Below the pieces are notes generated by a model. The model ran no database searches, had not been told where the DNA came from, and saw nothing but the letters and a program-made list of their open reading frames with translations. From the NCBI RefSeq assembly GCF_000189555.1, contig NC_017276.1: a stretch of DNA of 64,000 nucleotides, one strand, 5' to 3'. This DNA is from Saccharolobus islandicus REY15A. Its GTDB lineage: Archaea > Thermoproteota > Thermoprotei_A > Sulfolobales > Sulfolobaceae. Positions 1,689 to 20,545 of this stretch are shown piece after piece. The translations under genes and the position numbers were made by a program. Positions within the stretch are counted from its first letter, which is position 1. Each line of letters starts with the position of its first letter.

Positions 1689-4600
1689 ATGAACTACGAT
1701 AGTAACATAATGGTAGAAAATAAAGGTCTTAGACTGAATAGAAGGGACTTCTTGAAAGCTTCTGCTGCAGCCGGTCTTGTCATGGGGCTTGGTTATTTTG
1801 CATCAAAATATAATTTTAACATATTCGTCACACGGGATGCCGTAAATGATGAAGAGTTACAACCGGGTTGGCAGTATTCCTATGTACCCAGTATATGCGC
1901 GTTTTGTTCGTCAACTTGTGACATTTTAGTGGAAACTGAATATAAAAATGGTTATATGAGAGCTCTCGAAATCGATGGTAATCCCCTTTCACCTCTAAAT
2001 GAGGGTAAAGTTTGCCCTAGAGGAAGAGCTGGGATTTTCAGAACTTACAATGTAGATAGGCTTAAGACACCACTAATTAGAACTGGTCCAAAAGGTACTT
2101 GGAGTTTTAGAGAGGCCACTTGGGAGGAGGCAATTAATTACATAATGCAGAACATAAAACAATTGAATCCACAACCATACGAATTCCTTTTAATTGGTGG
2201 TGGAATACCATGTGCAAATTATAAGCCCTATTTCATTCCGTTTACTCTAGGTACACAAATACCTAATATAAATGGTACTCCGATGCAAACGTGCCTATTT
2301 AGTGATCAAGTGCCAATAGGTTTCGTAATAGGTGGATTCGATCTACATGCCACTGATATGATGGATGATATGACGTATTCCTCTTTAATAGTTGCGTGGG
2401 GTACCAGTGGAATCCCTGCAGGAATATTCGTAAATAGGGCAATAAGGTATGCAAAAGGTATAGAAAACGGTGCCTATGTTATAGCAATCGATCCCAGGAT
2501 GTCTGAAGCCGCATCTAAGGCTAATCTATGGATTCCAGCAAAACCTGGTTCTGATCTTTATATTGCCATGGCTATTATTAACTACTTAATCCAAAATAAC
2601 TATTATGATGACGAATTTGTAAGGTATTACACTAATGCTCCCTTCTTAGCCTATAAAGAAAACGATGTTGTTAAATTACTAGAGGAAGATTATGATGATG
2701 GTACTGTAAAGGCATATTACGTTTACGATGAGATAAGTGGGCAAATTGTAGAGGTACCACCGTTTACAAATACTAATAAATACGACGTTAATGGTAATTT
2801 TATCAAACCAGCATTAAACGCTCCTCAAGGTTTAACTTATAATGGTAAACAAGTACAAACAGTATTCCAATTCCTAGCACAAAAAGTTAGTAATTATACG
2901 CTCGAATACGCGGCTCAAGTTGCAGACGTTCCCCTATCACAACTTCAAGAGTTAGCATTTAGAATTGCAACAATGAAACCAATGACGATAATTACCGGGT
3001 TAAAAGGTTTCTTCAACGATCAAGCTGTACAATTTAGAAAAGCTTACGCAACTATAATGGCGTTAACTGGTAACATAGACATTAGAGGAGGTTGGGTATA
3101 CTCTGCAGTTTATAGAGAAGGTATTAAGAAAGTGGTAAATGCTTATAATAACATGGTCAGTAGTGGGAAGACGAAGCCTGGTATATTATTACAAAGGCCT
3201 GAGGTATTGGAACAACTACCAGTCAATGAATTACCAGGAGCTTTCTTCGCCATGTTTCCTATCATATATGTTTATAACAACCCTTCATTCTGGATAACTG
3301 GTGTTCCAGCACTTAGCTATGCCTATAATCAAGTTCTAAAGCAACAAGGGAAGAAACCAGCTGGAGCTTATACGTTATTTGAAGAATCGGGATCATATGC
3401 CGCAATTAAGGGACAAGTTACTTGGAATGGCCAACCCTATAAACCTAAAGTTGCAATGTCCTATGGAGGTTCACCATTTAACTTCAAATGGGATGAGTAT
3501 AAACAAGTGTTGGAGACCACATTCTACATTATGATAGATATACTACCGACAGAGGCTAGTTTATATGCAGATGTGATTTTACCGGATGTAACTTATCTAG
3601 AAAGAGATGAATTCTTCTGGGATGATGGCCCAGCCATGGATAGGGCAATTAGGGGCAGATGGCAAACAATACCAGTGTTATGGCCTAATACCGCAAATGG
3701 TTTGGATTTATTCATAATGTTTGCGTACATGTTAAATCCACAAGCTGGAGACGCCTATATACAATGGATGGCTAGGTTCGCTGGGGTACCTTTAGATATA
3801 TTAAAGTCAGTTATACAACAAGAGATGCCCAATTATCAACAATATTTAATGAAGAATAACGGTTATCCACCATGGGGTAGTTTCACAGCTAAAGCGTGGA
3901 GAGAGGCTCAACTTAGCGTATTGTCAGAGGAACTAAACATGCCTAAAGAGCAAATATTGCAAACCTTAAGAAATAATGGTGTGATTGTAATTAAGATTGT
4001 TGATGATTATTTTGCAAACCATGAAAGAATACCATGGGACTTACCAGCTGCAACTCCAACTGGTAGAATTGAGATATATTCAACTATATTATACTATTAC
4101 GTTATACAGAATTATGGATATGACCCAGTATGGGATCCAATAATAGCTGAAATACCACCAAATTGGAATGGAGGTTATGCAGTTGAAGATGGCGTTTATC
4201 ACTCACCACCAACGCCATATAACGATCCAACGTTTAAACCAACACTACCAGAACTCTTCTTCATAGAGTATAAGATCCCACAATTCGCTTACACGTCTAG
4301 CGCTGACAATCCGCTGTTGATGGCTATTACTTCTAATAGTTATCATAAAGATATCTTAATGAGGGCTTGGATAAATCCAACTACTGCAGCACAATTAGGA
4401 ATTAACGAAGGAGATTGGATCGCTATCGAAAGATGGAAATTACCAAACCCAGATGGTAGCATACCTAAACTAATTGTTAGGGCCCATTTGACTCAGTGGA
4501 TAAGACCAGATACAATAGGAGTACCAGAGCCTTTTGGTCAAAGGAACCCAGCATTAACTACTGCAACCAAAGCTGTAAACGAGTTTGGCAATCAGCCAGT

Positions 4601-4841
4601 ATCAGTAATGTGGGCACCAGGTAGAAATCCTTTAGGTGGTTATCACATGAATGAACAATTCACTGTTAGGGTTAGAAAAGCGACGTCTGATGAGATTCAA
4701 GCTGCAACACAATTGGCAAGTGTGCAAACTCCAGACACATTACCTTCACAGCAAGCTAAAGTTACCACTCCTAACAATTCCGCTTCTCAAAATGATTGGC
4801 AACAATACGTCTCATACGGTAATGTTTCCACATTAGGGTGA
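1689..4841 (+). CDS. sreA: Molybdopterin oxidoreductase catalytic subunit, sulfur/polysulfide reductase SreA-like
   Basis: Twin-arginine signal RRDFLK; N-terminal FeS motif CAFCSSTC...KVCPRG; bis-MGD family segments ([44 protein letters not shown]); gene order matches sreABCDE. Confidence 0.85.
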
Positions 4842-4847
4842 TCCCTC

Positions 4848-5534
4848 ATGTCCACACAAGTTTCAAACCCATATATGCAATTTGGGAATACTCAACCTTG
4901 TAAACACTGGGGATTCGTGGTTAAGGTAGACCAATGTCTAGGCTGTGATGCTTGTGTTGCTGCGTGTACAATAGAGAATCAAACGCCATTCTGGCGAGGT
5001 CTATTTAGAACTCATGTTGAAGATCTAGAATTAGGAGAATATCCCAACACTCAGAGAGTCTTCGTACCTAGATTGTGTATGCAATGTGAAAACCCACCAT
5101 GTTATTATGTATGTCCAACTGGCGCTACCCAAATTGTTGCTGGAGGTATTGTAGTGGTTGACGAGTATAAATGTATGGGATGTCTTTACTGTGTTGAGGC
5201 ATGTCCATATGGTGCTAGATACTTCTACACTTACGAGGATATTGAGAAGTCCAAGGAGTATTTTGGATTGAATTCAATTCACGTGGTTCCTCACGTAGAT
5301 AAATGTACTTTCTGCTACGGTACAGCCCCAGAAGGCACTTATACTCCTGCATGTGTAAGAACTTGTCCGGGTCATGCCAGAGTATTTGGGTGTCTTGATG
5401 ATCCTAATAGTGAGGTTAGTATATTAGTTAATACTGGGCAAGCAGTAGTGTTGAATCCGGAATTAAACGTTCAACCTAAAGTTTTTTACGTGTTTAATAG
5501 GCAGTTGGGTAGGGGAGGAGGTGGTAACTCATGA
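4848..5534 (+). CDS. sreB: 4Fe-4S electron-transfer subunit (SreB/DmsB-like)
   Basis: [42 protein letters not shown]...PACVRTCP motifs. Confidence 0.9.
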
Positions 5535-6826
5535 ATAAATTCCTATTAGCTTGGACTATAATATTCATAATAATTGGAGGAGGGATATTACTTTACGGTA
5601 TGAGCTTTAATCCCATATCATGGGCTAATGGCCTAGTGACATTTACTGAGCCTAATGACGAGCCAATACCTTGGGGACTTTTAGTAATTGGCTATATGTT
5701 TTTCGGAGTTATAGGTACTGGCGTTAGCACTTACAATTCACTATATGAACTGTTTAATAAGAATCATCCAGAAAAGAATCCGTTTAAGAATATCTCATTA
5801 AGAAACGAGTGGATAGCACTAGCTGTACTAATACCGGGCTGGATTATGGTCTTTGCATCAACTTATAAGCCTGGAGAAGCTGTCTATATTTACACGAGCT
5901 TTAGAGATACCTCAAGAATAGCTTGGAACGGTTTATTGTACGCACTTGTGGGTATTGGTATAATTCTAGAAATACTAGCATTAATAGGGGAGAAGAGAAG
6001 GGAATATAAGGACCCTATTAGTAGACTCTTGGCTTGGCTATCATCTAAATCAGTATTGATATTAATAGTTGGCTATGCAATACTAATGGAGTTAATACTG
6101 GATGCGAACTTAGGCTCAGTATTCGGTTACTTATCAACATGGGTCTACGAGTTCGGTCCATTCATGTCAATGTTATTCGTCATATTATCATTCTATTCCG
6201 GTATTGCGATGCTATCATTTATGACTCCGTTATATAATAGATTTAGAAAAGTTAAGGAAGATCCAAATAGTTTGAGTATACATGAAATGTATAAAATACT
6301 AGGAAGAGACGGTGTATTAGCTACGATAGCAGTAGGTTTTTCACTACTGTGGTGGTTATGGTTAACAGCAACGAATCAGCAAACTTCAGCTTGGGCAGAG
6401 CTTATGATTTCTGGGCCATATAGTGTAGTCTTTCTAATAGGTGGAGTACTAGTTGGTGTGATAATTCCAATAATCCTTTACGGGCTTGTATATAAGAGGG
6501 GAAGTAGCCATATGTTAGTAACATCTTCGATATTCACATTACTTGGAATGTTCTCGATAATTACGATTGCTGATATCATACCTCAATCAATAACGTGGTA
6601 TTATTCAGTCTCACCAATATCTCCATCAAATTCCAACTGGGTTTACGAATTGCGCAGTATTTTCAATAACGGTCCATCGTGGACATACCTGCCATTTAAT
6701 ATATCGTTCTACGATATAGTGTTCTTCATTGGCTCAGTACTACTATTACTTGGGATTTACACATTGGGCGTAATACTATTACCATTAGAAGAAGATGAAA
6801 AGCCAAGACACCTTATATTCAAGTGA
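5531..6826 (+). CDS. sreC: NrfD/PsrC-type membrane anchor (SreC-like)
   Basis: Multiple TM helices, [12 protein letters not shown] segment, 4-bp overlap with the sreB stop. Confidence 0.8.
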
Positions 6827-6832
6827 AGTCAT

Positions 6833-8200
6833 ATGACATCCCTTTTTTATTCACCCCTTATTAAATACCGAGTAGATGTTTTGCCCTCATCTGAGTTGAA
6901 AAAGGAAAACATTAATACCAAAGCCTTAGTCGTTATAGGAGATGGAATTGATAGGGAAAAAATTTCAGAAGATCTAGAGTTAAACCCCTTGCTGGTAAGA
7001 ATAGTTGACAAGGATAGTAGTAAGGAAGAGGTAGAATACAACAAAGTAGTTCTAGAAAATGCCTGGCTAGCAGATTTAGCTCCAGTTGAAGAGATAAAGT
7101 CCATTGATAGACGAAGTCTTTTACGCGGAGAAGTAAAAAGGGCTAAAAAGGTTGACAAGCCAATTTACCTTAGCGAATATTGTAATGGCTTATATAAGGC
7201 ATGTAATGTATGTGAGTTTTCATGTCCTTACAACGCTATTAAAGTTGATAAGAAAACTGGAGTAAATATTGATTACATAAAATGTACATCTTGTGGTCTA
7301 TGCGTAGCTTCATGCCCAGTTAGTGCTATACAATTTCCATCACTTTCCCAAAATTCGATTTTTGAATTAGCAAAGGTAAAAGGGGAAAAGAGGATTACAT
7401 GCTATAAAAATACTAAAAATAGAGGAGTCAAGATACCTTGTTTAGCAATGCTATCGGAGGTAGATATAGTATTATTGAAAAGCAGTGGGAATTTAACCTT
7501 TGAATGTCCAGGGTGTGAATTTCAAGATAATCTAAAGCATTTCATTGAAGTGATCAAGGAATATAACGAGAGAATAGGAGGAATCAGCTTTTATTCCCCA
7601 TATGAAAAAATTGAGGCAAAAGAGACAAAGGAACTAAATACTACTCCACAGTCATTTTACAATAGGGCTGAGGCTAGAAGGAACATAAGTGATGAATTGC
7701 CATACATATTATTTGAGGTGAGTATTGATAATAACAGATGTACTTTATGTGAAAGCTGCGTTAATTGGTGCCCCACATCAGCACTAAAGCTCAGAAGGGA
7801 TAGTGGAGTGGAAGAAATAGACTTTGATCCCAAAAGATGTATAGGCTGTAATTTGTGTGTCAATGTTTGCCCAGAATCGTGCAAATTAGAAGAAGGTAAA
7901 ACAAGTGAGATTCCTCCAAATATAGCATCTCTTACTAAGGTTATTAAGGTGGAAAAGAGTAAAAGCGTTAACAAAGAGGTAAGGAAATTAGTGGGCGATG
8001 AATTAGTGAGATGCAGAGTTTGTGGAGCACCAATAGGTTCGAGGAAAAGTCTTAATCATGTTAAGAAAATAATGATTGAAAAGGGGGCTTCGTGTGAAGA
8101 TGAGTGGTTGGAGAGATGCCCTAAGCATAGGGTAGAGTACGCGTTTCAGAAACAATTTTCATTTAATGCAAGATTTAAACCTAGAGGTGATCTAAGATGA
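6833..8200 (+). CDS. sreD: Polyferredoxin (SreD-like)
   Basis: Several CxxCxxCxxxCP motifs ([36 protein letters not shown]). Confidence 0.8.
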
Positions 8201-8739
8201 AGTCTCTCTCTACGGATTTCAAGATCTTTTCCTTTTTATTTCTGAGCCCGAGATATATTAAAGACGTTAAAGGGCTTATGGAGGAGATAAAGGATAAGCC
8301 ATATTACAATACATTAAAGCAAATAATCCAATTTACAGAAACTAACTATGATAAGGTAGCTACGGAATTCACTTCATGTTTTATAAATGATTACAAACAC
8401 GTTAACTGCCCACCTTACGAATCGTGGTATAGGGAGAGAACTGTGTATGGCATTTCAGCACAAAGAGTATTAGAAGAGTACATCAAATATGGTATTTATC
8501 CAAAGAAACAACTAGCTGATCACATATCTACGGAATTGGAATTCGTATCATTCCTCTTGTTCGTAGAACAAGAAGACGAAGCTAAAAAGTTTATAAAAGA
8601 ACATATAGTAAGCTGGGTTCCCAAATTAATTGAGGATATTCTAGCAAACAGTAAAGGGGAGTATACAAAACTGTTAGGTTTAGCGCTTAAGCAATTCTTA
8701 GATTATGCAATACAAACTATCTTTGTAGTCAATAGATAG
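8197..8739 (+). CDS. sreE: TorD/DmsD-family molybdoenzyme chaperone (SreE-like)
   Basis: PPYESWY and [11 protein letters not shown] signature motifs. Confidence 0.85.
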
Positions 8740-8912
8740 TTCTATTTTCTTTTAAATGTATAATAAATTTTTAACTTTGATTATTTACCTTTTTACAAGA
8801 TTTAAAAAATCCTATTTAAACGATATTACACTTTATTTCTTAATATGTCTAAGCTATTAGGGGTTAAGGATATATCAAGAAATTTCCTTTTATTATCTTT
8901 GAGGAGTAAAAT

Positions 8913-11033
8913 ATGGCCAAAAGAATTTGGGGTGACGTTTGGTCAAACTTAGTATTAGTCGCGACAGTCCTTGTATACGTAGTTTACATTGCGTTAGCTG
9001 GTTATACGTTAACGCATTTACCTCCAGTTCCATCAGTAGTTGAGACCGAAAACGGTACTGTATTATTTACGGGAGGTGAAGTTATAAGCGGAAAGGTATT
9101 AATGCAGAAATATGGATTATTCGATTACGGTAGCTTTTGGGGATTCGGAGGTTATTACGGAACTGATTTTACTGCTCTAGCCTTAAAAGTTATAAATCAA
9201 ACTGCAGATCCACCTACGATAAAGGTAGATGGTCTAGCTTACTCCTCCATAACTGATTCAGAGACAAGTAAATGGATAGTGACCAACGATTACGTAAAAG
9301 CTTACAACACGCTTTACAATGAGCTTTACAATATTTTGTACAACAATTCCTCCAACTATGGACTTAAGCCTAACTTTGTGAGTCCAAACGATTTGAGAAA
9401 TATAACGGCATTTATTTTATGGGGTGCTATGATTTCTTTCCTAGGCTATACTAATGGTTTCCCTTACATGCCTCAACAAACTCAACCATCCGTAAACGTT
9501 AGCCTATCAACGTGGATAATGGTAATCATCCTTTTAGCGGTCTTAGTTTCAATGGTGAGCTACGTTAGTCTAAAAATACTTGACCATTGGAGAGATCCTA
9601 GAATATCTGTCCCCCTTCCTCCACCATCTGCATCACAAAGGATAGGCTTGATAGGAGTATTCTTCGCCTCAGTCCTCGCGGGTGTACAAGGTTTGTTAGG
9701 ATATTTGGCTATGCATTATTACGTAGACCCAGAGGGAATATTAGGTTTAATAAACTTCCTATCTTTTAACGTTACTAGGGCCTTGCACTTAAATATGGCA
9801 GTAGTGTGGATAGCACTTACATGGATTGCCTTTTCAATCTTTGCGTTACCATATCTGGGTGTTCCCTTATCCAGAAAGCTTTCATTTGCAATTTTAGGTT
9901 TAACGCTATTTGCCGGAGTGGGTCTACTTCTAGGAATATTGTTCTCCTATAATCAGTTAATCCCATCACCCTATTGGTTTATTTTCGGTGCTCAAGGAAA
10001 GCCAAATGACGTTGATCAAGGTACCTTCTGGTTGCTCCTAGTTGCTCTAATATTCTTCTTAGCCTCCTCATTATTCTTCAAAGCTTCGAAGTCAACCGCG
10101 GAACCTTTAAGACCACTAACGAGGATTACTGCAATAGGTCTCTTGGGATCTGGAATAGGTGTAATCTTTGGATCATTACCAATAATTGCTCCATGGCCTA
10201 ACTTCACCGAAGACCAGTTCTTCTTATGGATTATGATACATTCGTTCGTTGAGGGATTCTGGCCCTCTATAGTAATACCAGTAATATTAATACTTTTAGT
10301 TGTCAACAATTTAGTACCACCAAGTCTAGCTACGATGGCAGCGAGTATAGATTCCGTTAGCGAAATACTCTCTGGGATGATAGGTACTGCACATCATTAT
10401 TATTTTGGAGGTGAACCGTTATTCTGGATGTACTTGGGAGCATCAGCATCCATATTAGAGGTTATCCCTATTTTCTTCTTAACTTATTACGCAATTTTGC
10501 TAGGGAGAAGAGGTGAAATTAAGACCGAATTTCAAAAGACGTTAGTAACTACCACCTTAATCTCAGCTATTGGAGGGGGATTTGTAGGAGCGATTATTGG
10601 TGGGGCTTCAATATTAAACGCTCCAATGATAAACTATTACGTCCATGGGCTACAATTTACCATGGCTCACGCGCATTTAGCATTCCCACTAGTATGGGGT
10701 TTAACTGCTATTCTAATGTGGATTGCTGCATTGTATTTGTCCGGTGGGATTAAAGAAAACGAGCTAAAGACGTTGAGAATTATGATACTGATTTACGCTA
10801 TTGGTTTCATACTGCAAGGAATAGACTTATGGACATTAGGGGCTGTTCAACTAGCTACAGTTTTAAGGACAGGTTACTGGGCGGCTAAAGGTACACTATT
10901 CTATCTACTATCTATTCCAGATTTAATAGCGTGGCTTAGAATGATTGGTGATGTAGTTGCGGGTTTCGCTGCTGCCGTAATTATAATTTACACGCTCAAG
11001 GGTGTAATTAAATCTTACAAGATCAAAATATAA
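8913..11033 (+). CDS. norB: Quinol-dependent nitric oxide reductase (qNOR, heme-copper oxidase superfamily)
   Basis: GSFWGFGGYYGTDFTA N-terminal motif; His ligand motifs RALHLN, HSFVEG, GTAHHYY, AHAHLAF; many TM helices. Confidence 0.85.
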   Translation: MAKRIWGDVWSNLVLVATVLVYVVYIALAGYTLTHLPPVPSVVETENGTVLFTGGEVISGKVLMQKYGLFDYGSFWGFGGYYGTDFTALALKVINQTADPPTIKVDGLAYSSITDSETSKWIVTNDYVKAYNTLYNELYNILYNNSSNYGLKPNFVSPNDLRNITAFILWGAMISFLGYTNGFPYMPQQTQPSVNVSLSTWIMVIILLAVLVSMVSYVSLKILDHWRDPRISVPLPPPSASQRIGLIGVFFASVLAGVQGLLGYLAMHYYVDPEGILGLINFLSFNVTRALHLNMAVVWIALTWIAFSIFALPYLGVPLSRKLSFAILGLTLFAGVGLLLGILFSYNQLIPSPYWFIFGAQGKPNDVDQGTFWLLLVALIFFLASSLFFKASKSTAEPLRPLTRITAIGLLGSGIGVIFGSLPIIAPWPNFTEDQFFLWIMIHSFVEGFWPSIVIPVILILLVVNNLVPPSLATMAASIDSVSEILSGMIGTAHHYYFGGEPLFWMYLGASASILEVIPIFFLTYYAILLGRRGEIKTEFQKTLVTTTLISAIGGGFVGAIIGGASILNAPMINYYVHGLQFTMAHAHLAFPLVWGLTAILMWIAALYLSGGIKENELKTLRIMILIYAIGFILQGIDLWTLGAVQLATVLRTGYWAAKGTLFYLLSIPDLIAWLRMIGDVVAGFAAAVIIIYTLKGVIKSYKIKI

Positions 11034-11346: not shown

Positions 11347-11733
11347 CTACTTCTTATTGCAATCCTCGTTTAACGTGATTATGCTCATATCATCTGGATA
11401 ATCAATTATACAGAAGAACTCCAATTGATCACTCTCATTAATAATTGCGTGTTTCACGTTAGAGTTTATAAAAATGTAGTCACCCTCCTTTAACTCATAA
11501 ACTTTATCGCTCACACAAACCTTACATTTCCCCTTAGTTACAACAACAGTCTCCTGGTACTTGTGGATATGCATTGGTATAATTCCATCCCTCAATAGGG
11601 TGAATTTTCTTACAGCGTAGTTAGAATCATTTTCTTTAGTAACTAACCATTGAATGAACGCGTTTTTAGAACCATTGACTAGCACCCTATCCATTTTTAC
11701 TTCCTTGATATTCGAAACAAAATAATCAACCAT
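11347..11733 (-). CDS. Cupin-domain protein
   Basis: [16 protein letters not shown] and [11 protein letters not shown] cupin motifs. Confidence 0.8.
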
Positions 11734-11763: not shown

Positions 11764-12156
11764 CTAACGATATCTCATAAAACAATATAAGTAACCTACA
11801 AGCATTGAGGTTAAAGCTAAGGAAAACTCAAACCCGTAAAGCATTACTTTTGTGAGCCACTCGTAGTCTGTTAACAAGTAACTCAAACCACCAAATCCAG
11901 CTATTCCAATGGATACCAAATTGCCTAAACCAATGAATTTGGGGAATAATAAACCAGTCTTGTTAGCTAACATATAAAGGTAAATTCCAAAACCTCCAGT
12001 GATTCCAGCAAAGATAATGTGAAGTATCAAGATACTAGTTGACAAAGTGTCTTGAACAGTATCATACATTGCCCTAACTAGCCCAAATGAGAATGCCAAA
12101 AACATTATGATGATACTAAAAATTGAATATTTATAGATCTCTCGCATATTCGCCAA
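11764..12156 (-). CDS. Small membrane protein, unknown function
   Basis: About four hydrophobic segments; overlaps the upstream gene, operon-like. Confidence 0.6.
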   Translation of the reverse strand: MANMREIYKYSIFSIIIMFLAFSFGLVRAMYDTVQDTLSTSILILHIIFAGITGGFGIYLYMLANKTGLLFPKFIGLGNLVSIGIAGFGGLSYLLTDYEWLTKVMLYGFEFSLALTSMLVGYLYCFMRYR

Positions 12157-12688
12157 CTTTAATCACCTCAGACGACTTTCCAATTCCAGTCGTCTTTACT
12201 CTTAAAAATATAGAGGACTCGAGAAGATAGTATTGAATGTCCTCTAACAACTCATACCAAGCGATGTTGGGAATATCACTCCTTATTTTAATGTCTAACT
12301 CATGAGCAATTTTCTTCAATGATGGGACACATGAAAAAGTTGTAATAGAACACCTATCACACTGATATGTAGCATCGTAATAGTTGAAATATATCAAATG
12401 TCTATCATTAGTGATATACATTATCCCCTCCTTCAAATTTATCCCTTTATTATTTACCGTAAAGGGAAGTACTGCCTTAAAACCAATTGCATTGTCAATT
12501 AGTAACCCCATTCTCCTTAGCCTATCTACGATAAAGTAAAAATAACTCTTACTGATCTCCCCATCCCTCCTATCACTGCTTAAAACCCTTAAGTAATCTT
12601 TTACCTTGCTGAAACTGTCATCCCTAAGTAATATAACGTCATCTGAAATTATTGGCCTTGCAACATTGTTGATCACAAGGAGACACAT
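12131..12688 (-). CDS. Hypothetical protein with Cys cluster (CDRC...C)
   Basis: 185-aa ORF with typical codon usage, first of three co-oriented genes. Confidence 0.6.
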   Translation of the reverse strand: MCLLVINNVARPIISDDVILLRDDSFSKVKDYLRVLSSDRRDGEISKSYFYFIVDRLRRMGLLIDNAIGFKAVLPFTVNNKGINLKEGIMYITNDRHLIYFNYYDATYQCDRCSITTFSCVPSLKKIAHELDIKIRSDIPNIAWYELLEDIQYYLLESSIFLRVKTTGIGKSSEVIKVGEYARDL

Positions 12689-13109
12689 ATACGATACTAT
12701 TCTTCTTTTTACGATAAAAATTTAACCATATTAACTTTCTCAAAACGTTAATTAACACTGTTAAAGAAAGTCGTTTTTGCCCAATTTTAATTAGATAAAA
12801 AAGTTAAAATTTTCTTAATTCCAATATGTATTTATGAACTAAACGTTAAAGGCAAGGGTAAACTTTCAGTTGTAAATTATTTTTCTCGAAACTCATAAAC
12901 TATATCATAAATCAAGGATTAAATTTCTAGTGAAAAGTATAAAGATTAATTAATTATTTTGAATAATGCATAGCATCAAGGATAAACCTAGGATAACCCA
13001 GCATATAAATGAGAAATTGGCTATTCAAGAATCCTATAAACAAAATTGTGCTAATCTTCTTTTTCTTACTATTATTACTACTATAGAATAGCAACGGGAA
13101 AAATATATA

Positions 13110-13796
13110 TTATAAATTCTTAATTGTGATATCCCCGTGATATGGTATCAATACAGTATAGGGAAGGGATACTAAATAATTAAACGAGTTCACGGCAAAG
13201 TCGTAATTCCAAGAGAATATTCTAAGGGGTGGTGATAACGTATTTCTAACATTCCTAATAGCATCACCAACTATCAAATACTTACCATCAAATAAGGCAA
13301 TATGCCCCTTTGTATGCCCCGGTACATGTATAACCTTAAACCCTCCCAACTCCTCACCGCCTTTTAATGCAACATCAACCTTAACTGATTCATAATGCAA
13401 ATTGTTAATCCTCTCCATGGTCTTCTTAAAGATTGAAAACGAAACGCCCAACTCATCACTATAAATTATGTTATATTTTGGAGGATTTTCCAAATTTTCT
13501 AACTCATCCACATGGGCATATATTTTAGCATCACTTATTCTCTTTATTGTCATAGCGTTGCCGGCATGATCGTGATGCCAATGTGTTATTACGATATCCG
13601 AAATATCTTCTAGCGAATATCCCCATGTCTTAAGATAGGACTCAATCTGATCAAGGTATCCCGGTAAACCAGTATCAACAATCATTAACCCCCCACAAGG
13701 ACCATTCTCTATAACGGATATATTGTGATTAAGTATCGTATCGAAAAATTCAGGCTCTAACAACTCCATTATCCTAACCTTACCGATTTTAACCAT
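13110..13796 (-). CDS. Metallo-beta-lactamase-fold hydrolase/oxygenase
   Basis: IVDTG, THWHHDHAG (HxHxDH), PGHTKGH, GDA and PYHG motifs; start overlaps the rSAM stop. Confidence 0.9.
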   Translation of the reverse strand: MVKIGKVRIMELLEPEFFDTILNHNISVIENGPCGGLMIVDTGLPGYLDQIESYLKTWGYSLEDISDIVITHWHHDHAGNAMTIKRISDAKIYAHVDELENLENPPKYNIIYSDELGVSFSIFKKTMERINNLHYESVKVDVALKGGEELGGFKVIHVPGHTKGHIALFDGKYLIVGDAIRNVRNTLSPPLRIFSWNYDFAVNSFNYLVSLPYTVLIPYHGDITIKNL

Positions 13797-14980
13797 TAAT
13801 CCATCACCAAACGTATTAATCTAACAACCTTTTCGTACGCTTCCCTCTTACAATCGTCCCCATTAATGCTACTCAAAAATTTACAACCACCCATACACAA
13901 AGGTAGATATGGACACGATTTACACTTATCCTCAATTTTAACCTTCCACCATAACGACTTGTTCGTTACTTTAACACTCCCATCCTCTTCCAATTTACCC
14001 TTAACGTAAAGCGGATTACCGGTGAAAGCCCAACAAGGGTAAATATTTCCCTCTGGATCAACTACAATATCTTCATTTGAATAGGCAACACAAAAACCTA
14101 GTCTAAATACGTCATGAGGAACTTCAAATCCATATTTTCTCGCAGTCTCCCAGAATTTCACTAAAACATCTCCTTCAGCCTTGCTGGATATTGTGAAATC
14201 CCACCACTCATTTCTGAACATGTTTGAATGAACCAAATGAGGGTCTAATCTCACTTTATTTATCCCTTCCCTCTTCAACTCGTCCAATAGCTCCTCTATT
14301 TCGGTCAAGTTCTTTACATCAATGTTTATCCTCAATACTACTTTTATCAAATCTTGTACCTCCTTTAGATTCTTCACTATTACATCGAATGAACCCTTAC
14401 CTCTAACAAAGAACCTCCTCTCATCGTGAACTTCTTTTGGTCCGTCTAACGTTATTTGTGCATAAGTCAACCCTAGTGGAATTAGTCTTTCAGCTATTTT
14501 TCTAGTTAAAAGAGAACCGTTAGTCACTACACTGAACGAGTATTTTAAGTCAGATAATTCTCTCGATATCTCCTCTATTTTCCTAAGCTGTAAGAGTGGT
14601 TCTCCACCAAAGTAGGTTATCCTTACCTTCCTACCTCTCTCGTTTTTCCTAATATAGTTTACGAAACCTCTTATAACCTTATCTGATACTGAAACGTTTT
14701 TCCTAAACCCTTTCTGGAAACAGTAAATACAATCGAAGTTGCAGTTATAAGTTAACACAAGAGTGGGTTCTAGAACGGGTTTTCTTAAAAATTTATCAAT
14801 TTCCTCATCTAAATCCTCATCTGCAGCTGAAAAGCCTTCCTCTATTATATCCTTTAAATGTTCTGGTACAATCCCTTTCCTTAACTTTTCAATTTCCCAT
14901 AAATTGAGCTTAATTGCGTATCCAGTGAGGGTATTGAAGAGGACATCTTCAATAAAAAGATTAAACTTGGAGAGGGCCAT
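13796..14980 (-). CDS. Radical SAM/SPASM peptide maturase candidate
   Basis: [23 protein letters not shown]; SPASM cysteines CVA...GNIYPCW...[14 protein letters not shown]...C; short N-terminal segment (VLFNTLTG) resembling an RRE. Confidence 0.9.
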
Positions 14981-14992
14981 GACTATTTGCCC

Positions 14993-15079
14993 TCAGTCTC
15001 CCCAGCTTGGAGAGTAACCACATCTACCATATTTCCTCTCTATTACAACTACCTTTTTTGCTTGAAGAGTTGCCTCCAT
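14993..15079 (-). CDS. Putative RiPP precursor peptide, 28 aa (MEATLQAKKVVVIERKYGRCGYSPSWGD)
   Basis: Manual translation: ATG at 15079, TGA at 14993-14995, 12 bp before the rSAM start; preceded by GGGTGG SD-like sequence and a TTTAAA TATA-like box; below the ORF-track size cutoff. Confidence 0.75.
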   Translation of the reverse strand: MEATLQAKKVVVIERKYGRCGYSPSWGD

Positions 15080-15213
15080 TTTTCCACCCGTAAGGCTACA
15101 TATGATTAATTACATTTAAACTTAATATTTGAAAGAGGGCCATTTGCGCAATTAACAGTATTTAGGCGGTATTATGAAGAACCATTTAAAAATCTAGAAT
15201 ATTCGACAATAAT

Positions 15214-15770
15214 ATGGGAAAAGGGCTTTTAAAAATAAAGGAATTGGAAGGAGAGGCGCTGTTCTTTCTAGACGAGAGTAGGATAGTCATTAGCACGTCA
15301 ATTAGGAAGGTTTTGGCCAAGATTGGTAGTAAGCCCGTGACGCACGTTAATATAGGTTTTTCTTCACTTCACGTTTTTCTCACTATAAACGCGTGGACTG
15401 GTGAAGTGGTTGTTGGTATTCTTAGGAGGACCAATTCTGAGTCTTTGAAGTAATTCTTGAGGTACTTTAAGAGGCGTATAGGTAATGGAAGGGTTTACAT
15501 GGTTATGGATAATTATTCTCCTCATAAAACCAAGGGTACGCTTGAGGTTTGTAGTAGGAAGGGTATTTATCCCATATTTACTCCTCCTTATTCGCCCGAG
15601 CTTAACATGGCCGAGGCAATCTTCAAGCCCTTCAAGGTATACATGAGTAATAAAGTTTCGCTCGATAGATGAGGTTGTAAATTGTATTGAACAGTTCTTT
15701 GAGGAAAATAAGTATAGGTTTAATCTTAATGCAATAACGTACTTAGGATTAGATAAAATTGAGGTCTAAG
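15214..15770 (+). mobile_element. IS630-family transposase remnant
   Basis: LDES...MDNYSPHK...PPYSPELNMAE DDE motifs; in-frame stop after 15450; N-terminal HTH missing; boundaries approximate. Confidence 0.8.
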
Positions 15771-15780
15771 AACTTTCCGA

Positions 15781-16130
15781 ATTTTTACCTGTTATGTGCA
15801 CACGAAGTTGGGAGTTTACCTCATTTACTCTGTGGGGGATAGGAATGAGAGTACTTTTCGCGAGGTCAAAAAGTATTTGTTGGATGAGGGTAGATGGGTG
15901 AGCGATGATTATAACTTGTACTTCTGGTTGAAAGGTTACACGGTTGTCTCACCGGTTAACCCTAACGAGTCACTGTACTCTTCATCGAGGGATAGGCTAA
16001 TTAGATTCAAGAGGGCTACTAAGGCAGTAAATAGGAGCATTAGTACCATGATGTACTCCATAGCCCTAGTCTTATGGAAAAAGAGGTTAATCCCAGAATT
16101 TGTTGCTTAATGATGACATTATCTCCACAC
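15781..16130 (+). mobile_element. 3' half of an IS1-family element (ISC796-like)
   Basis: FTCYVHTKLGVYLIYSVGDRNEST...WVSDDY...RDRLIRFKRATKAVNRS is InsB-like; ends in TATCTCCACAC (16120-16130). Confidence 0.7.
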
Positions 16131-16410
16131 TCGTCCAGTCTATTGAAACGTTTATTTCCTTCTCTCCTTCAGCGTCTTCGAGGATATTTTCCTCACTTGT
16201 TCCAAGAGTTTCTCAAGTGGTGTTAGGTTTTACGGCATTGAATTAGAGGACATAAGGAAGGCAATTGAGAGGGCTACTGTTAAAGAGTAAAACATTTGAT
16301 TTTCCTTAAATCTTGTTTTTTCTGCCAACTTTTCCGGAAAAGCTGACAGCATATTAGCAAAATTTATTTAAATCTTGACACCAACTATTATTGTGTCATA
16401 CATTTCACAG

Positions 16411-17694
16411 ATGAGCTTTCAAAACCCTTGGTGGGTTGATAAGAATAGGATACTTGAAGATGAACACGTGAAAAGGGCTAAGGTTATAGTACCACCAATC
16501 GATGAGAGTGCTTTGATATTAGGACCTAGGCAGGTGGGAAAAACGACTTTCCTAAAAACTACCATAAAGACCTTGCTTGAGAGAGAAGACCCTAGGTCAA
16601 TTCTCTTCTTCTCTTGTGACGCGTTTTCCAAGAAGGAGGAGTTAATAAGTTTAGTTAACGAGTACAGAACGTTAGTCAATAGGGAGAAAAGTGCGTACAT
16701 ATTTTTAGATGAAATAACTTCAGTGAGCGATTGGAATACAGCTTTGCTACACTTGTTCAATGCTGGTTACTTTAATGACTCATTGATTTACGTCACTGGT
16801 TCTTCCTCTATAAATTTGAGGAAAGAGATGCTACCGGGGAGACCCATAAAGAAGTACGTGTTTTACCCCTTGAATTTTAGAGTTTATTTCAACACTTTTT
16901 ATAAAAAATTAATACAAGATCACGTGAAAGTTGACGAGAAGGATGAACTTTACGAAAACGCTTTGAAGCTCTTACCATATATTTCAGAGTTAAACAAGGC
17001 TTTATTGGAATACATTAGGCGAGGGGGTTTCTTCGCAACTTCATTTTCCGAAAACCCATTATCGCTTTACGAGGCTTATAAGGACGCAATACTTTCAGAG
17101 TTTTTAAAGACTGAGAGAAAGGAGAGCATGTTTAAGGTAATTATTAGGAAAATAATTGAGAGCTATGGTAGTAGGATTTCTGAAAACACTATTGCCAAAG
17201 ACGTTAACGTTTCTCACACTACTATTGGCGATTACTTAGACGTTTTAGAAAAGTTGTTCATTATAAGGACTTTTAGGAAGATAGAGGGAGGGGGAAAGAC
17301 TAATTATAGGAGTTTGAAGAAGGTGTATTTTATTGACCCCTTCTTCTTTAGGGTAATGAAGATTTATAGTGTTGGCAAAGACATTGATGATATCGAGATA
17401 CCTTTGATCGTTGAGGGAATTGTCGGCGAGCATTTGGCAAGGGAATACAAAGAGGTTGGTTATTTACATTTTAAGAGCGGTAAGGAGGTTGACTTCTCTG
17501 TAGGTAATGTAAAAGTTGAGGTTAAGTGGAGGAGAGAGAAAGAAAAGAAGAGATATAATAACGTTGATTACGTTTTAACTATTGATGAGTTTAAGAAAAG
17601 TGATGAGCAATTAACTTTGCCAGTCTCAATTTTCCTCTATTTAATCTCCTCTGATAAGTTCTTTTATGAGTTGACTAGTATTTCCCACTTGTAA
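16411..17694 (+). CDS. AAA+ ATPase with DUF4143-like C-terminal domain
   Basis: GPRQVGKTT Walker A, IFLDEI Walker B, TGSS, KKVYFIDP, EVDF...VEVK. The ATG at 16411 (MSFQNPWW) is preferred over the TTG at 16375. Confidence 0.85.
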   Translation: MSFQNPWWVDKNRILEDEHVKRAKVIVPPIDESALILGPRQVGKTTFLKTTIKTLLEREDPRSILFFSCDAFSKKEELISLVNEYRTLVNREKSAYIFLDEITSVSDWNTALLHLFNAGYFNDSLIYVTGSSSINLRKEMLPGRPIKKYVFYPLNFRVYFNTFYKKLIQDHVKVDEKDELYENALKLLPYISELNKALLEYIRRGGFFATSFSENPLSLYEAYKDAILSEFLKTERKESMFKVIIRKIIESYGSRISENTIAKDVNVSHTTIGDYLDVLEKLFIIRTFRKIEGGGKTNYRSLKKVYFIDPFFFRVMKIYSVGKDIDDIEIPLIVEGIVGEHLAREYKEVGYLHFKSGKEVDFSVGNVKVEVKWRREKEKKRYNNVDYVLTIDEFKKSDEQLTLPVSIFLYLISSDKFFYELTSISHL

Positions 17695-18116
17695 AAAACC
17701 CTAGTATTCTTGTACAGATAAGTCCACATCTCATCCACAACCTTAGTAACAACACTACCCTTAACTAAGCCTTTAGTCTTCCCCCACAACTTAACAGGCT
17801 TCTCGTACTTCTGCCCACTATAACGCTTAATCCAAGTGAACACAGTACCTAGAGGTACATTAAGCACCTTGGATATGGCCCTCATACCATTAACATCTTT
17901 AAAGCCTCCTCCCTCAACTTCTTAGAATGGTAAGTAGCATCACCCAAGAAGTACCTACCACAATCCCTACACAAATACCTCTGCCTACTACACTTAACTA
18001 CATGATGAGAACCACAAGAGGGGCAAGAAACGTCTTGCCTAACTACAGCCTTCCTACCCATAAGTAATACTTGTTATACAAATATAAATAGCTTAATGGC
18101 TACACTATCTCCACAC
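17685..18116 (-). mobile_element. 5' half of an IS1-family element (ISC796-like), frameshifted
   Basis: Zn-ribbon remnants, MRAISKVLNVPLGTVFTWIKRY HTH, VVDEMWTYLY; terminal repeat TATCTCCACAC at 18106-18116. Confidence 0.75.
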
Positions 18117-19821: not shown

Positions 19822-20545
19822 TCATTCATTTGAAATATTTACATTTATTATCACCTCCTTGTCTAATAAACATGTCGGGGTGCAAAGCGTGTTGAATATT
19901 AGAAAGAATGTTGATAACCACCTCGTTATTGTTAACTTGTTGGAGTTCCAAGGGAAGTGGAAGTCCATCGATGCCAGCTTGTGTTTCAAGCTTCTGAACC
20001 CTTGTTCCGCATATTCCCTCTCGTTGAACGTTACCCTTTTGTGTTCTACGTTAAACCATGAGAAGGCGTTGTATGCCGTTGCTCCGTCATGCAGATAAAC
20101 TACCTTATCTACCCTCGTCCTAAACACCCTCCTTGTGATTTCCTCAACCCTACACATGTTCACCAAAACTACCAAAATATGTACTCCACTCCTAACACCC
20201 GTTAACATGAAGAAAGGTATAGCCTTGGTTTTAACGTCCCTGACGATCCACACGTAATAGTACTTGTCCTTGACCAGCCTCACCTTAGTCTCATCAATCG
20301 CATAAACCCCGCTCAATGGTACAGCGTACTTAACATAACTCAACCTCCTATGGTAGTAGAGCAAGGTAGAGTGGGGTAACACTGCCCCCAAGAGGATAAT
20401 CCGGAAATGTAGTCAGCCAAGGCATAGGCTAAGGTATCCTTAGAGTAAAACCTTTGCTTAAGATTAATATACTCCACTAGTATTAGTAGTAATTGGATGA
20501 GCACGGGAACTTTCCACATAGTTCCCGTAATCTCACCTCCAAGTA
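19822..20545 (-). mobile_element. IS6-like DDE transposase pseudogene
   Basis: AIDETK, YLHDG...Y, AEQGFRSLKHK motifs; ATG at 20519 behind a GGAGGTGA SD, followed by a frameshift/stop; ends approximate. Confidence 0.7.

Follow-up and report, generated by a model that had tools for sequence, protein, structure and literature searches.

Our analysis of a 64,000-nt stretch of the Saccharolobus islandicus REY15A genome (NC_017276.1; hereafter the window) points to a RiPP system (for a ribosomally synthesised peptide with post-translational modification) on its minus strand, in which a 28-aa open reading frame (ORF) would encode a precursor peptide and the adjacent radical S-adenosylmethionine (SAM) enzyme of the SPASM type would be its dedicated maturase, making a thioether from Cys20. 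Judging from sequence comparisons, we put the probability of this reading at roughly 0.7; that the peptide and the enzyme are a real pair we hold with high confidence, and their exact chemistry with low to moderate confidence. What argues for a precursor-maturase pair, as the initial annotation of this DNA had proposed, is that the ORF always lies directly upstream of the enzyme gene, that it is under selection at the protein level, that the two genes are co-oriented and translationally coupled, and that the enzyme has affinities to peptide maturases. The coordinates, expression signals, 28-aa ORF, 12-nt gap, radical SAM/SPASM enzyme and overlapping gene for a metallo-beta-lactamase (MBL)-fold protein that it had reported each hold on direct reading, and are as follows:

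14993..15079, minus strand: putative precursor peptide gene, 28 aa plus stop, encoding MEATLQAKKVVVIERKYGRCGYSPSWGD; read directly.
15115..15120, minus strand: TATA-like box TTTAAA, about 40 nt 5' of the peptide ATG; read directly.
15084..15089, minus strand: Shine-Dalgarno-like GGGTGG, 4 nt ahead of the peptide ATG; read directly.
13796..14980, minus strand: radical SAM/SPASM enzyme, candidate peptide maturase, 394 aa; Pfam Radical_SAM E = 3.9e-23.
14720..14743, minus strand: radical SAM [4Fe-4S] motif C80-x3-C84-x2-C87, invariant in 21 orthologues.
13850..14092, minus strand: SPASM region, with C297, C316, C353, C356, C362, C366 and C377 invariant in the 21 orthologues.
14777..14980, minus strand: N-terminal domain of the enzyme, about 68 aa, resembling a RiPP recognition element (RRE) by topology in an AF2 model of low confidence.
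13110..13796, minus strand: MBL-fold metallo-hydrolase, 228 aa, its start overlapping the stop of the radical SAM gene (ATGA); Pfam Lactamase_B E = 1.3e-29.

Upstream DNA of orthologous radical SAM genes was inspected wherever it was readable, in Sulfolobaceae, Acidiplasma and other Thermoplasmata. A homologous ORF of 23–28 aa was found directly 5' of every one of these genes, ending 1–25 nt before the enzyme start or overlapping it; such a short ORF upstream of the orthologues was the check that had been set for the proposed pair. The peptides come in 15 distinct variants, whose C-terminal 20 positions align without internal gaps and which all end in R-C-[G/N]-Y-S-P-S-W-G-[D/E/N/Q]-stop. Nine residues are invariant (R15, R19, C20, Y22, S23, P24, S25, W26 and G27), position 21 holds either G or N, and every variant finishes with D, E, N or Q, immediately followed by the stop codon. 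Over R19..G27, pairwise comparison gave 393 synonymous and 40 non-synonymous codon differences, all 40 of them at position 21, with two to five codons used for each invariant residue and Ser25 encoded by both AGY and TCN. This codon pattern, together with the nine invariant residues, argues for a translated and strongly constrained peptide rather than a chance ORF or an RNA element, and as judged from the alignments the 28-aa ORF is far beyond chance. A structured-RNA explanation is likewise unsupported by an Rfam scan of 12600..16400, which gave nothing meaningful. The core of the peptide is kept in two archaeal phyla, while the radical SAM enzyme diverges to about 50% identity.

Among the likely target residues named in the initial annotation, Cys20, Tyr22 and Trp26 proved invariant and Asp28 is replaced only by E, N or Q, while Tyr17 of the window peptide is A, I, L, M or T in other variants of the 15. 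The variability of Tyr17 refutes tyramine splicing at K-Y-G (the X-Y-G motif of spliceotides), one of the modifications that had been considered. At one locus, that of Stygiolobus sp. CP850M (L010; numbers of this kind label the loci compared), we found a 135-aa fragment of the radical SAM gene product (residues ~160–329) and no peptide ORF, probably a decayed copy; Stygiolobus azoricus, unlike L010, has a full-length radical SAM gene.

The peptide ORF starts at the ATG at 15079 and stops with TGA at 14995..14993, 12 nt before the ATG of the radical SAM gene at 14980. We propose that it consists of a leader of about M1–R19, basic and with a beta-prone K-[VIL]-[VIL]-[KR]-[ILV]-x-R-[KR] stretch, followed by a core C20–D28. 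The same operon is present in S. solfataricus, where the peptide is MEAILQTKKIVVIERKYGRCGYSPSWGD. The segment AAGTTTAAATGTAATTAATCATA, which holds the TATA-like box, is also found there, and TTTAAA at 15120..15115 may be the promoter; GGGTGG at 15089..15084 would be a Shine-Dalgarno site, its S. solfataricus equivalent at the matching place being GGGTGA. At the junction between the peptide and radical SAM genes, a GGTG-type Shine-Dalgarno sequence follows the peptide stop in Sulfolobaceae and a TAATG overlap joins the two genes in Thermoplasmata, which argues for co-transcription and coupled translation of the pair. A separate element, TTTAACA(A/G)(A/G)GTT, is conserved about 60–75 nt 5' of the peptide ATG in Acidianus, Aramenus and Sulfurisphaera loci (L002, L003, L169, L168, L082), and could be a promoter or a regulator-binding site.

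The 394-aa enzyme scores 82.9 bits with PF04055 against a cut-off of 29.5, which places it in the radical SAM superfamily. The initial annotation had described a CxxxCxxC motif and a full SPASM cysteine set, and all of these cysteines are invariant in the orthologues. The SPASM cysteines are arranged as C297-x13-G311-x4-C316 ... C353-x2-C356-x5-C362-x3-C366 ... C377, fitting CX9-15GX4C...CX2CX5CX3C...C, and there are seven of them in the family with no invariant eighth. The Pfam SPASM model did not reach E <= 0.01 on this protein; we assign it to the SPASM enzymes because of the seven-cysteine motif and its full-length matches to SPASM maturase models. Its best NCBIfam matches are all peptide maturases, led by the geopeptide model (241.8 bits, cut-off 400) and CefB (222.1, cut-off 600) and followed by TIGR04463 (167 of 525), Clo7bot (156 of 600) and PapB (152 of 340). 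Among solved structures CteB comes nearest, both in sequence (phmmer E = 2.9e-18, profile E = 5.5e-27) and in fold (Foldseek E = 1.6e-16), with anSME, ChlB, SuiB and SkfB ranking after it; the AF2 model used has a moderate mean predicted local distance difference test score (pLDDT) of 71. By these comparisons the enzyme is placed in the peptide-maturase branch of the SPASM enzymes. In CteB, PapB and Tte1186, auxiliary cluster 1 is held by three cysteines and has an open iron, and auxiliary cluster 2 is held by four (PMC10177961). The seven SPASM cysteines of the archaeal enzyme align to this CteB scheme, as a three-cysteine and a four-cysteine cluster. In PapB and Tte1186, the substrate cysteine, studied as selenocysteine, binds the iron of auxiliary cluster 1 (PMC10177961).

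A leader-binding function for the N-terminus would fit the same picture. In the AF2 model this domain has strands at residues 7–10, 13–16 and 22–24, followed by helices at 27–34, 40–46 and 57–65, with a pLDDT of only 36–70. In a partial alignment, profile positions 26–68 match the N-terminal domain of CteB, and the geopeptide and CefB maturase models match the enzyme from residue 1–13 onward, while no match to the Pfam PqqD/RRE models was found in it. Taken together, the predicted topology and these alignments are consistent with an RRE-like identity.

Orthologues of the enzyme form a clade at 50–100% identity with a sharp boundary, the next matches being at 39% or below. It includes S. islandicus, S. 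solfataricus, S. shibatae and S. caldissimus in Saccharolobus; Metallosphaera javensis, M. tengchongensis, M. yellowstonensis and M. hakonensis; Acidianus hospitalis, A. copahuensis, A. sulfidivorans, A. manzaensis and A. brierleyi; and, among other Sulfolobaceae, Sulfurisphaera ohwakuensis, Sulfurisphaera javensis, Stygiolobus azoricus, Sulfuracidifex metallicus and Candidatus Aramenus. Outside the Sulfolobaceae it is found in Acidiplasma and other Thermoplasmata. Distant homologues of the enzyme (25–29% identity) likewise have tiny single-cysteine ORFs upstream: an 18-aa peptide MKI[IV]xKKK[VI]VKxxCVSFK in two bacterial metagenome-assembled genomes (MAGs; L016:5663-5719, Victivallales, and L017:5651-5707), and peptides of the form ..DVAISATC[LT]xxGH in acidobacterial (Vicinamibacterales) MAG loci, for example L018, L021, L042, L093, L099 and L143. 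On their sequences, both groups may represent additional precursor families that annotation has missed. They emerged when the DNA 5' of about 150 distant homologues was mined for a shared core, a screen that otherwise gave mostly noise from GC-rich genomes.

The peptide had been taken to be unannotated, and it carries no name in the protein sources that we searched. No NCBIfam model matches it, and a word-indexed search of 5.8 billion proteins with a tandem query of two variants returned no candidate sharing words with it. An exhaustive phmmer search of 1.84 billion representatives found one unnamed 28-aa JGI/IMG gene call that is identical to the window peptide and occurs on 34 metagenome contigs; two further matches look spurious, one being without an aligned stretch and the other weak at 35% identity. 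The minimum gene length of Prodigal is 90 nt, and since the peptide genes are 72–87 nt long, they fall under it and are missing from genome annotations. Literature searches on archaeal and Sulfolobales RiPPs, ranthipeptides, Sulfolobus SPASM proteins, U32 together with RiPPs, and the core motif string gave no description of the peptide. They also turned up no characterised radical SAM-modified ribosomal peptide from Sulfolobales, in agreement with the initial annotation, which knew of none, and we know of none in any Thermoproteota.

The third gene of the cluster encodes an MBL-fold metallo-hydrolase. Its ligands H72-x-H74-x-D76-H77, H161, D178 and H220, the full binuclear-hydrolase set, are invariant in 31 homologues, and its AF2 model (pLDDT 95.5) matches MBL hydrolases in Foldseek at E ~1e-12, with TTHA1429, TTHA1623, YcbL, GloB and B3 lactamases as fold neighbours. 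A PqqB-like identity was considered and rejected: the matches are generic hydrolases of the glyoxalase-II/YcbL type, and PqqB is outside the best 25 families. The protein is identical in S. islandicus M.14.25, M.16.27, LAL14/1 and REY15A, where the gene order is radical SAM, MBL, a 185-aa gene, a 127–130-aa gene and a cupin gene.

Elsewhere, orthologues of this protein are usually encoded by the second gene of an overlapping pair whose first gene encodes a U32 protein. This two-gene U32-MBL unit is seen in Sulfolobaceae and Thermoplasmata (L081:3982-5791, L170:3750-5559, L084:5981-7811, L180:8878-10699). Cysteines in the patterns CX3C..C and, C-terminally, CX4CX2CX2C are invariant among the U32 proteins, for which the tRNA hydroxylase TrhP is the only curated match, and a weak one. 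The MBL gene has come to lie inside the radical SAM operon in S. islandicus and S. solfataricus; in Metallosphaera (L001, L081) and in Acidiplasma and other Thermoplasmata (L006-L009, L084) the U32-MBL unit is divergent from the peptide-radical SAM unit; and on a M. yellowstonensis-type contig (L170) the genes are co-directional, in the order p185, U32, MBL, AhbD-like radical SAM, AhbC/NirJ1-like radical SAM, peptide, radical SAM and p179. On an A. hospitalis-type metagenome contig (L086), where only the start of the U32 gene is visible, the U32-MBL unit is about 8 kb away. The MBL gene is kept adjacent in three arrangements and two phyla, which argues for a functional link of these genes, and for the MBL enzyme as a partner of the peptide and its radical SAM enzyme, as had been suggested. 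The MBL and U32 proteins may carry out leader removal, trimming or ring hydroxylation.

In the Metallosphaera-type clusters, two further radical SAM/SPASM genes stand between the MBL and peptide genes (L081:1854-3988, L170:5553-7705). The product of the first is AhbD/TIGR04053-like (354 bits, cut-off 395) and that of the second AhbC/NirJ1-like. Given these AhbD- and AhbC/NirJ-like affinities, and since neither the window nor any of the Thermoplasmata loci examined has them, we rejected them as part of the core system; they may be housekeeping genes of heme synthesis or may act in the peptide pathway.

Considering the likely course of maturation, the basic, beta-strand-prone leader (K-V-V-x-I-E-R-K) would dock onto the short N-terminal RRE-like domain, and the core C20-G-Y-S-P-S-W-G-D28 would enter the barrel, where, as in PapB and Tte1186, the Cys20 thiolate would become a ligand of the open iron in auxiliary cluster 1. 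The 5'-deoxyadenosyl radical would then take a hydrogen atom from a core residue and a thioether ring would form (-2 Da); as acceptor we favour the C-terminal D/E/N/Q, through its beta or gamma carbon, so that a nine-residue macrocycle would result. Finally, the MBL hydrolase, with the U32 protein where present, would process the peptide, perhaps including leader removal after the invariant Arg19. By analogy, a Cys20-derived thioether is the most likely modification, on account of the invariant single cysteine after Arg19, the CteB/PapB-like clusters, the family affinities of the enzyme, and the single-cysteine peptides of its distant homologues. Asp is the Cys-thioether acceptor of PapB (PMC10177961). 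Because the last residue of the archaeal peptides is limited to D, E, N or Q, our working hypothesis makes it the preferred acceptor and the ring nine residues long. Glu and Asn also serve as thioether acceptors (PapB, QhpD, NxxcB). Moreover, the near-frozen core in two phyla, together with the lack of any identified transporter or immunity gene beside the pair in the window, makes a physiological small molecule likelier than a fast-evolving antimicrobial; the product is more likely a cofactor, a metal ligand or a signal.

Several observations weigh against this reading or parts of it. The enzyme falls short of the cut-off in every curated named family, so that its chemistry cannot be transferred by homology, and the links made by SPASM enzymes of similar cysteine pattern include C-C, C-O and others. 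Motifs as used by cyclophane-forming enzymes, Tyr-x-x and Trp-x-x, are present in the core as well. Co-variation between G21/N21 and D, E, N/Q28 seems to be limited to one group of related loci, and is therefore weak evidence for a ring between positions 20 and 28. The model of the RRE-like domain is, with its pLDDT of 36–70, of low confidence. A tblastn search of the window for a U32 homologue or remnant found none, and the MBL/U32 unit also occurs apart from the peptide: in Sulfurisphaera ohwakuensis the U32-MBL and peptide-radical SAM units are both present and unlinked. A role of these proteins in maturation is thus argued from gene linkage.

The Tyr-x-x and Trp-x-x motifs lead to a serious rival, which we consider possible if rather unlikely, namely that the two genes are indeed a precursor-maturase pair but that the cross-link is an aromatic C-C (cyclophane-type) bond or an ether from Tyr22 or Trp26, for example in W26-G27-[D/E/N/Q]28 or Y22-S23-P24, with Cys20 used for metal binding, a disulfide or a later step. 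Both aromatic residues are invariant and both stand in aromatic-X-X triplets, the D/E/N/Q at the third place of W-G-X is of the type that serves as acceptor in triceptides, and the enzyme has weak matches to the cyclophane and ether maturases YhhB (68 bits) and DynA (108 bits). Matches to Cys-thioether maturases are, however, far stronger (PapB 152, geopeptide 242 and CefB 222 bits), the nearest structure is CteB, and binding of a substrate cysteine is known for just this arrangement, a three-cysteine auxiliary cluster 1; the distant homologues, too, adjoin tiny peptides with a single conserved cysteine, all of which favours the Cys20 thioether.

More ambitious, and in our judgement improbable, is the idea that the peptide gives rise to a redox cofactor or metal-binding prosthetic molecule of thermoacidophilic archaea, following the logic of pyrroloquinoline quinone (PQQ), mycofactocin or cysteine tryptophylquinone (CTQ) and unrelated to them in sequence. 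With the core cross-linked by the radical SAM enzyme and its Tyr or Trp ring hydroxylated by the U32 protein, the MBL enzyme and proteolysis would trim the product, releasing a quinone-like small molecule for respiratory or redox enzymes. The U32 family includes the O2-independent hydroxylases UbiU/V, TrhP and RlhA, and the archaeal U32 proteins have invariant cysteine clusters. As with PqqA and MftA, the core is invariant over two phyla while the enzyme drops to about 50% identity, and the position of its C-terminus is fixed; the parts parallel those of the PQQ pathway (peptide, radical SAM-SPASM enzyme, putative RRE, MBL-fold protein and peptidase-family protein), and no transporter was seen among the identified genes beside the pair in the window. 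Respiratory or redox enzymes are also frequent neighbours: cbsAB-soxN-type genes in A. hospitalis, 2-oxoacid:ferredoxin oxidoreductase and the Ahb-like radical SAM genes in Metallosphaera, a PQQ-repeat propeller protein in Sulfurisphaera javensis, a Mo-hydroxylase in Aramenus, and a quinol-dependent nitric oxide reductase (qNOR) with a Mo-oxidoreductase in Saccharolobus. These neighbours, however, vary by genus, and are therefore weak evidence for the function of the product. Against the idea, too, PqqE and MftC are outside the best 25 families for the radical SAM enzyme, the MBL protein, with B3 lactamases and glyoxalase II as its best matches and PqqB outside its best 25, is not specifically PqqB-like, E-x3-Y and a C-terminal G-V-Y are both missing from the peptide, an oxidase of the PqqC or MftD type was not seen, and the S. 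islandicus window has no U32 gene.

A very improbable reading would make the short ORF a regulatory upstream ORF, encoding a leader or arrest peptide through which translation of the radical SAM-MBL operon is adjusted, with a protein, heme or lipid as the substrate of the enzyme. The ORF is indeed very short and tightly coupled to the downstream gene, conserved Trp and Pro are found in some bacterial arrest peptides, and the enzyme carries the database names 'heme biosynthesis related' and 'arylsulfatase regulator'. These names, however, are automatic transfers, and what the enzyme matches best is not AhbC/D or anSME but peptide maturases that carry an RRE. The predicted leader-binding topology of the N-terminal domain and the leader-plus-Cys-core layout typical of RiPP precursors also speak for a substrate peptide, and the whole C-terminal nonapeptide is conserved, having been kept after transfer with the enzyme between phyla.

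The system had been confined to 13110–15120. Its peptide, radical SAM and MBL genes stand, and it appears to reach further, to the gene for a cysteine-rich protein of about 180 aa and, in other genomes, to U32. In the window this gene is:

12131..12688, minus strand: 185-aa protein of a Sulfolobaceae-only family, adjoining the peptide-radical SAM-MBL genes.

Members of this family have an invariant N-terminal Met-Cys, a C110-x2-C113-x6-C120 motif and a winged helix-turn-helix (wHTH)-like SKSY(Y/F)Y..L...GL stretch. The gene is present in most Sulfolobaceae loci and adjoins the cluster in the window, S. solfataricus, Metallosphaera, A. hospitalis, Aramenus and L170, where two copies flank it. 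No significant Pfam match (sub-threshold wHTH or WhiB hints only) and no PDB match was found for the family; with low confidence, its motifs suggest a metal- or redox-sensing regulator.

Further along the same strand of the window, a gene for a 130-aa predicted membrane protein (11764..12156) overlaps the end of the 185-aa gene and is followed by one for a 128-aa cupin (11347..11733), an arrangement seen only in S. islandicus and S. solfataricus and not in the examined loci of other genera. Beyond these, on the plus strand at 1689..11033, the gene for a molybdopterin oxidoreductase of 1050 aa comes first, followed by genes for its 4Fe-4S subunit and NrfD-type membrane subunit, for a poly-ferredoxin and a Nitrate_red_del chaperone, and for a qNOR-like NorB/COX1 protein of 706 aa; there are strains with a truncated NorB or with the Mo-oxidoreductase/NorB block replaced. 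The genes identified beside the pair in the window include no transporter, no immunity gene and no protease dedicated to RiPPs.

Upstream of the peptide gene lies a remnant of an IS630-type transposase (DDE_3) at 15457..15672, within mobile-element debris that covers 15214..16110, 17664..18061 and 19822..20391. Short ORFs at 17664..18061, one with a weak helix-turn-helix match, are taken as probable insertion sequence (IS) remnants. S. islandicus strains vary in this region, for example by IS110 insertions, and an AAA_14/DUF4143 ATPase gene amid the debris (16375..17694, plus strand) is present in all S. islandicus strains examined. In other genomes, a second, different MBL protein (252 aa; Lactamase_B plus ODP) is encoded near the cluster (L170:10719-12172, L001:8967-10405, L169:1-870), beside a protein of about 232–246 aa (with a weak STK_08120-like match in L169); the A. 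hospitalis-type loci (L086:9855-10511) have a separate 218-aa STK_08120-like protein in place of this second MBL pair.

Archaeal RiPP chemistry is almost unexplored, and this peptide, invisible to standard annotation, is among the most strongly conserved small ORFs. The invariant core, the U32/MBL pair and the cysteine-rich putative regulator hint at a physiological molecule rather than a bacteriocin. If our reading is correct, thermoacidophile biology would gain a new small-molecule player, and a function could be assigned to the archaeal U32-MBL pair, which is uncharacterised. Since S. islandicus and S. solfataricus are served by gene deletion, expression vectors and omics data, the product and its role are directly testable. 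A conceptual surprise would follow only if the cofactor idea were true; otherwise the system is a solid lead in a model organism.

Compared with known systems, the one described here appears on its sequences to belong to the radical SAM/SPASM class of RiPPs, nearest to the ranthipeptide maturases and outside the threshold of every curated family. The closest of these, CteB with its substrate CteA (thermocellin) and Tte1186 with SCIFF, are Cys-to-Thr thioether maturases. Like CteB, the archaeal enzyme has a radical SAM core and a SPASM domain with seven cysteines (3+4), preceded by what may be a leader-binding domain as in CteB, and a Cys core is encoded directly upstream of it. It differs from CteB in sharing only about 20% identity, in a precursor of 23–28 aa with one or two cysteines and a core without Thr, in its partners (MBL, U32 and the cysteine-rich ~180-aa protein), in its thermoacidophilic archaeal hosts, and in an N-terminal domain of about 68 aa, which we take to be shorter than that of CteB. 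PapB, which links Cys to Asp in the CX3D motifs of PapA to give freyrasin, resembles the archaeal enzyme in sequence (NF047865, E = 2.3e-44) and in its auxiliary-cluster scheme, and in both systems an acidic or amide residue stands C-terminal to the cysteine; at the same time, the score of 152 is below the cut-off of 340, the spacing would be C-x7-[DENQ], and there is a single motif where PapA has six repeats. Geopeptide (TIGR04280) and CefB 'Cys-every-fifth' (NF038107) maturases are the best-scoring models and cover almost the whole enzyme, its N-terminal domain included, but both are below cut-off (241.8/400 and 222.1/600), and a gap separates the clade (at least 50% identity) from its next matches (39% or below). 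To our knowledge, these two families have been defined purely by computation, and no chemistry is known for them.

With the PQQ pathway (PqqA, PqqE, PqqD, PqqB, PqqF) the archaeal system shares a tiny precursor with a frozen core, a radical SAM-SPASM enzyme with a (here putative) RRE, and MBL-fold and peptidase-family proteins. The likeness is one of parts list only, as there is no E-x3-Y, PqqE and PqqB are outside the best 25 families and no PqqC was seen. Mycofactocin differs in that the archaeal C-terminus is S-W-G-[DENQ] and not the G-V-Y of MftA, and MftC is outside the best 25 families for the radical SAM enzyme. The triceptide enzymes YhhB and XyeB are SPASM radical SAM proteins too, and the aromatic-X-X triplets of their substrates have counterparts in Y-S-P and W-G-[DENQ], but with the YhhB model, whose cut-off is 445, the enzyme reaches only 68, and the invariant Cys and CteB-like clusters point elsewhere. 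In its pattern of conservation, the core resembles cofactor precursors (PqqA, MftA) or SCIFF more than it does bacteriocins. What would set the system apart, as far as the sequences tell, is an extremely short precursor, an invariant nonapeptide core with a fixed C-terminus, the U32 and MBL partners, the cysteine-rich protein, and a range that takes in thermoacidophiles of two phyla.

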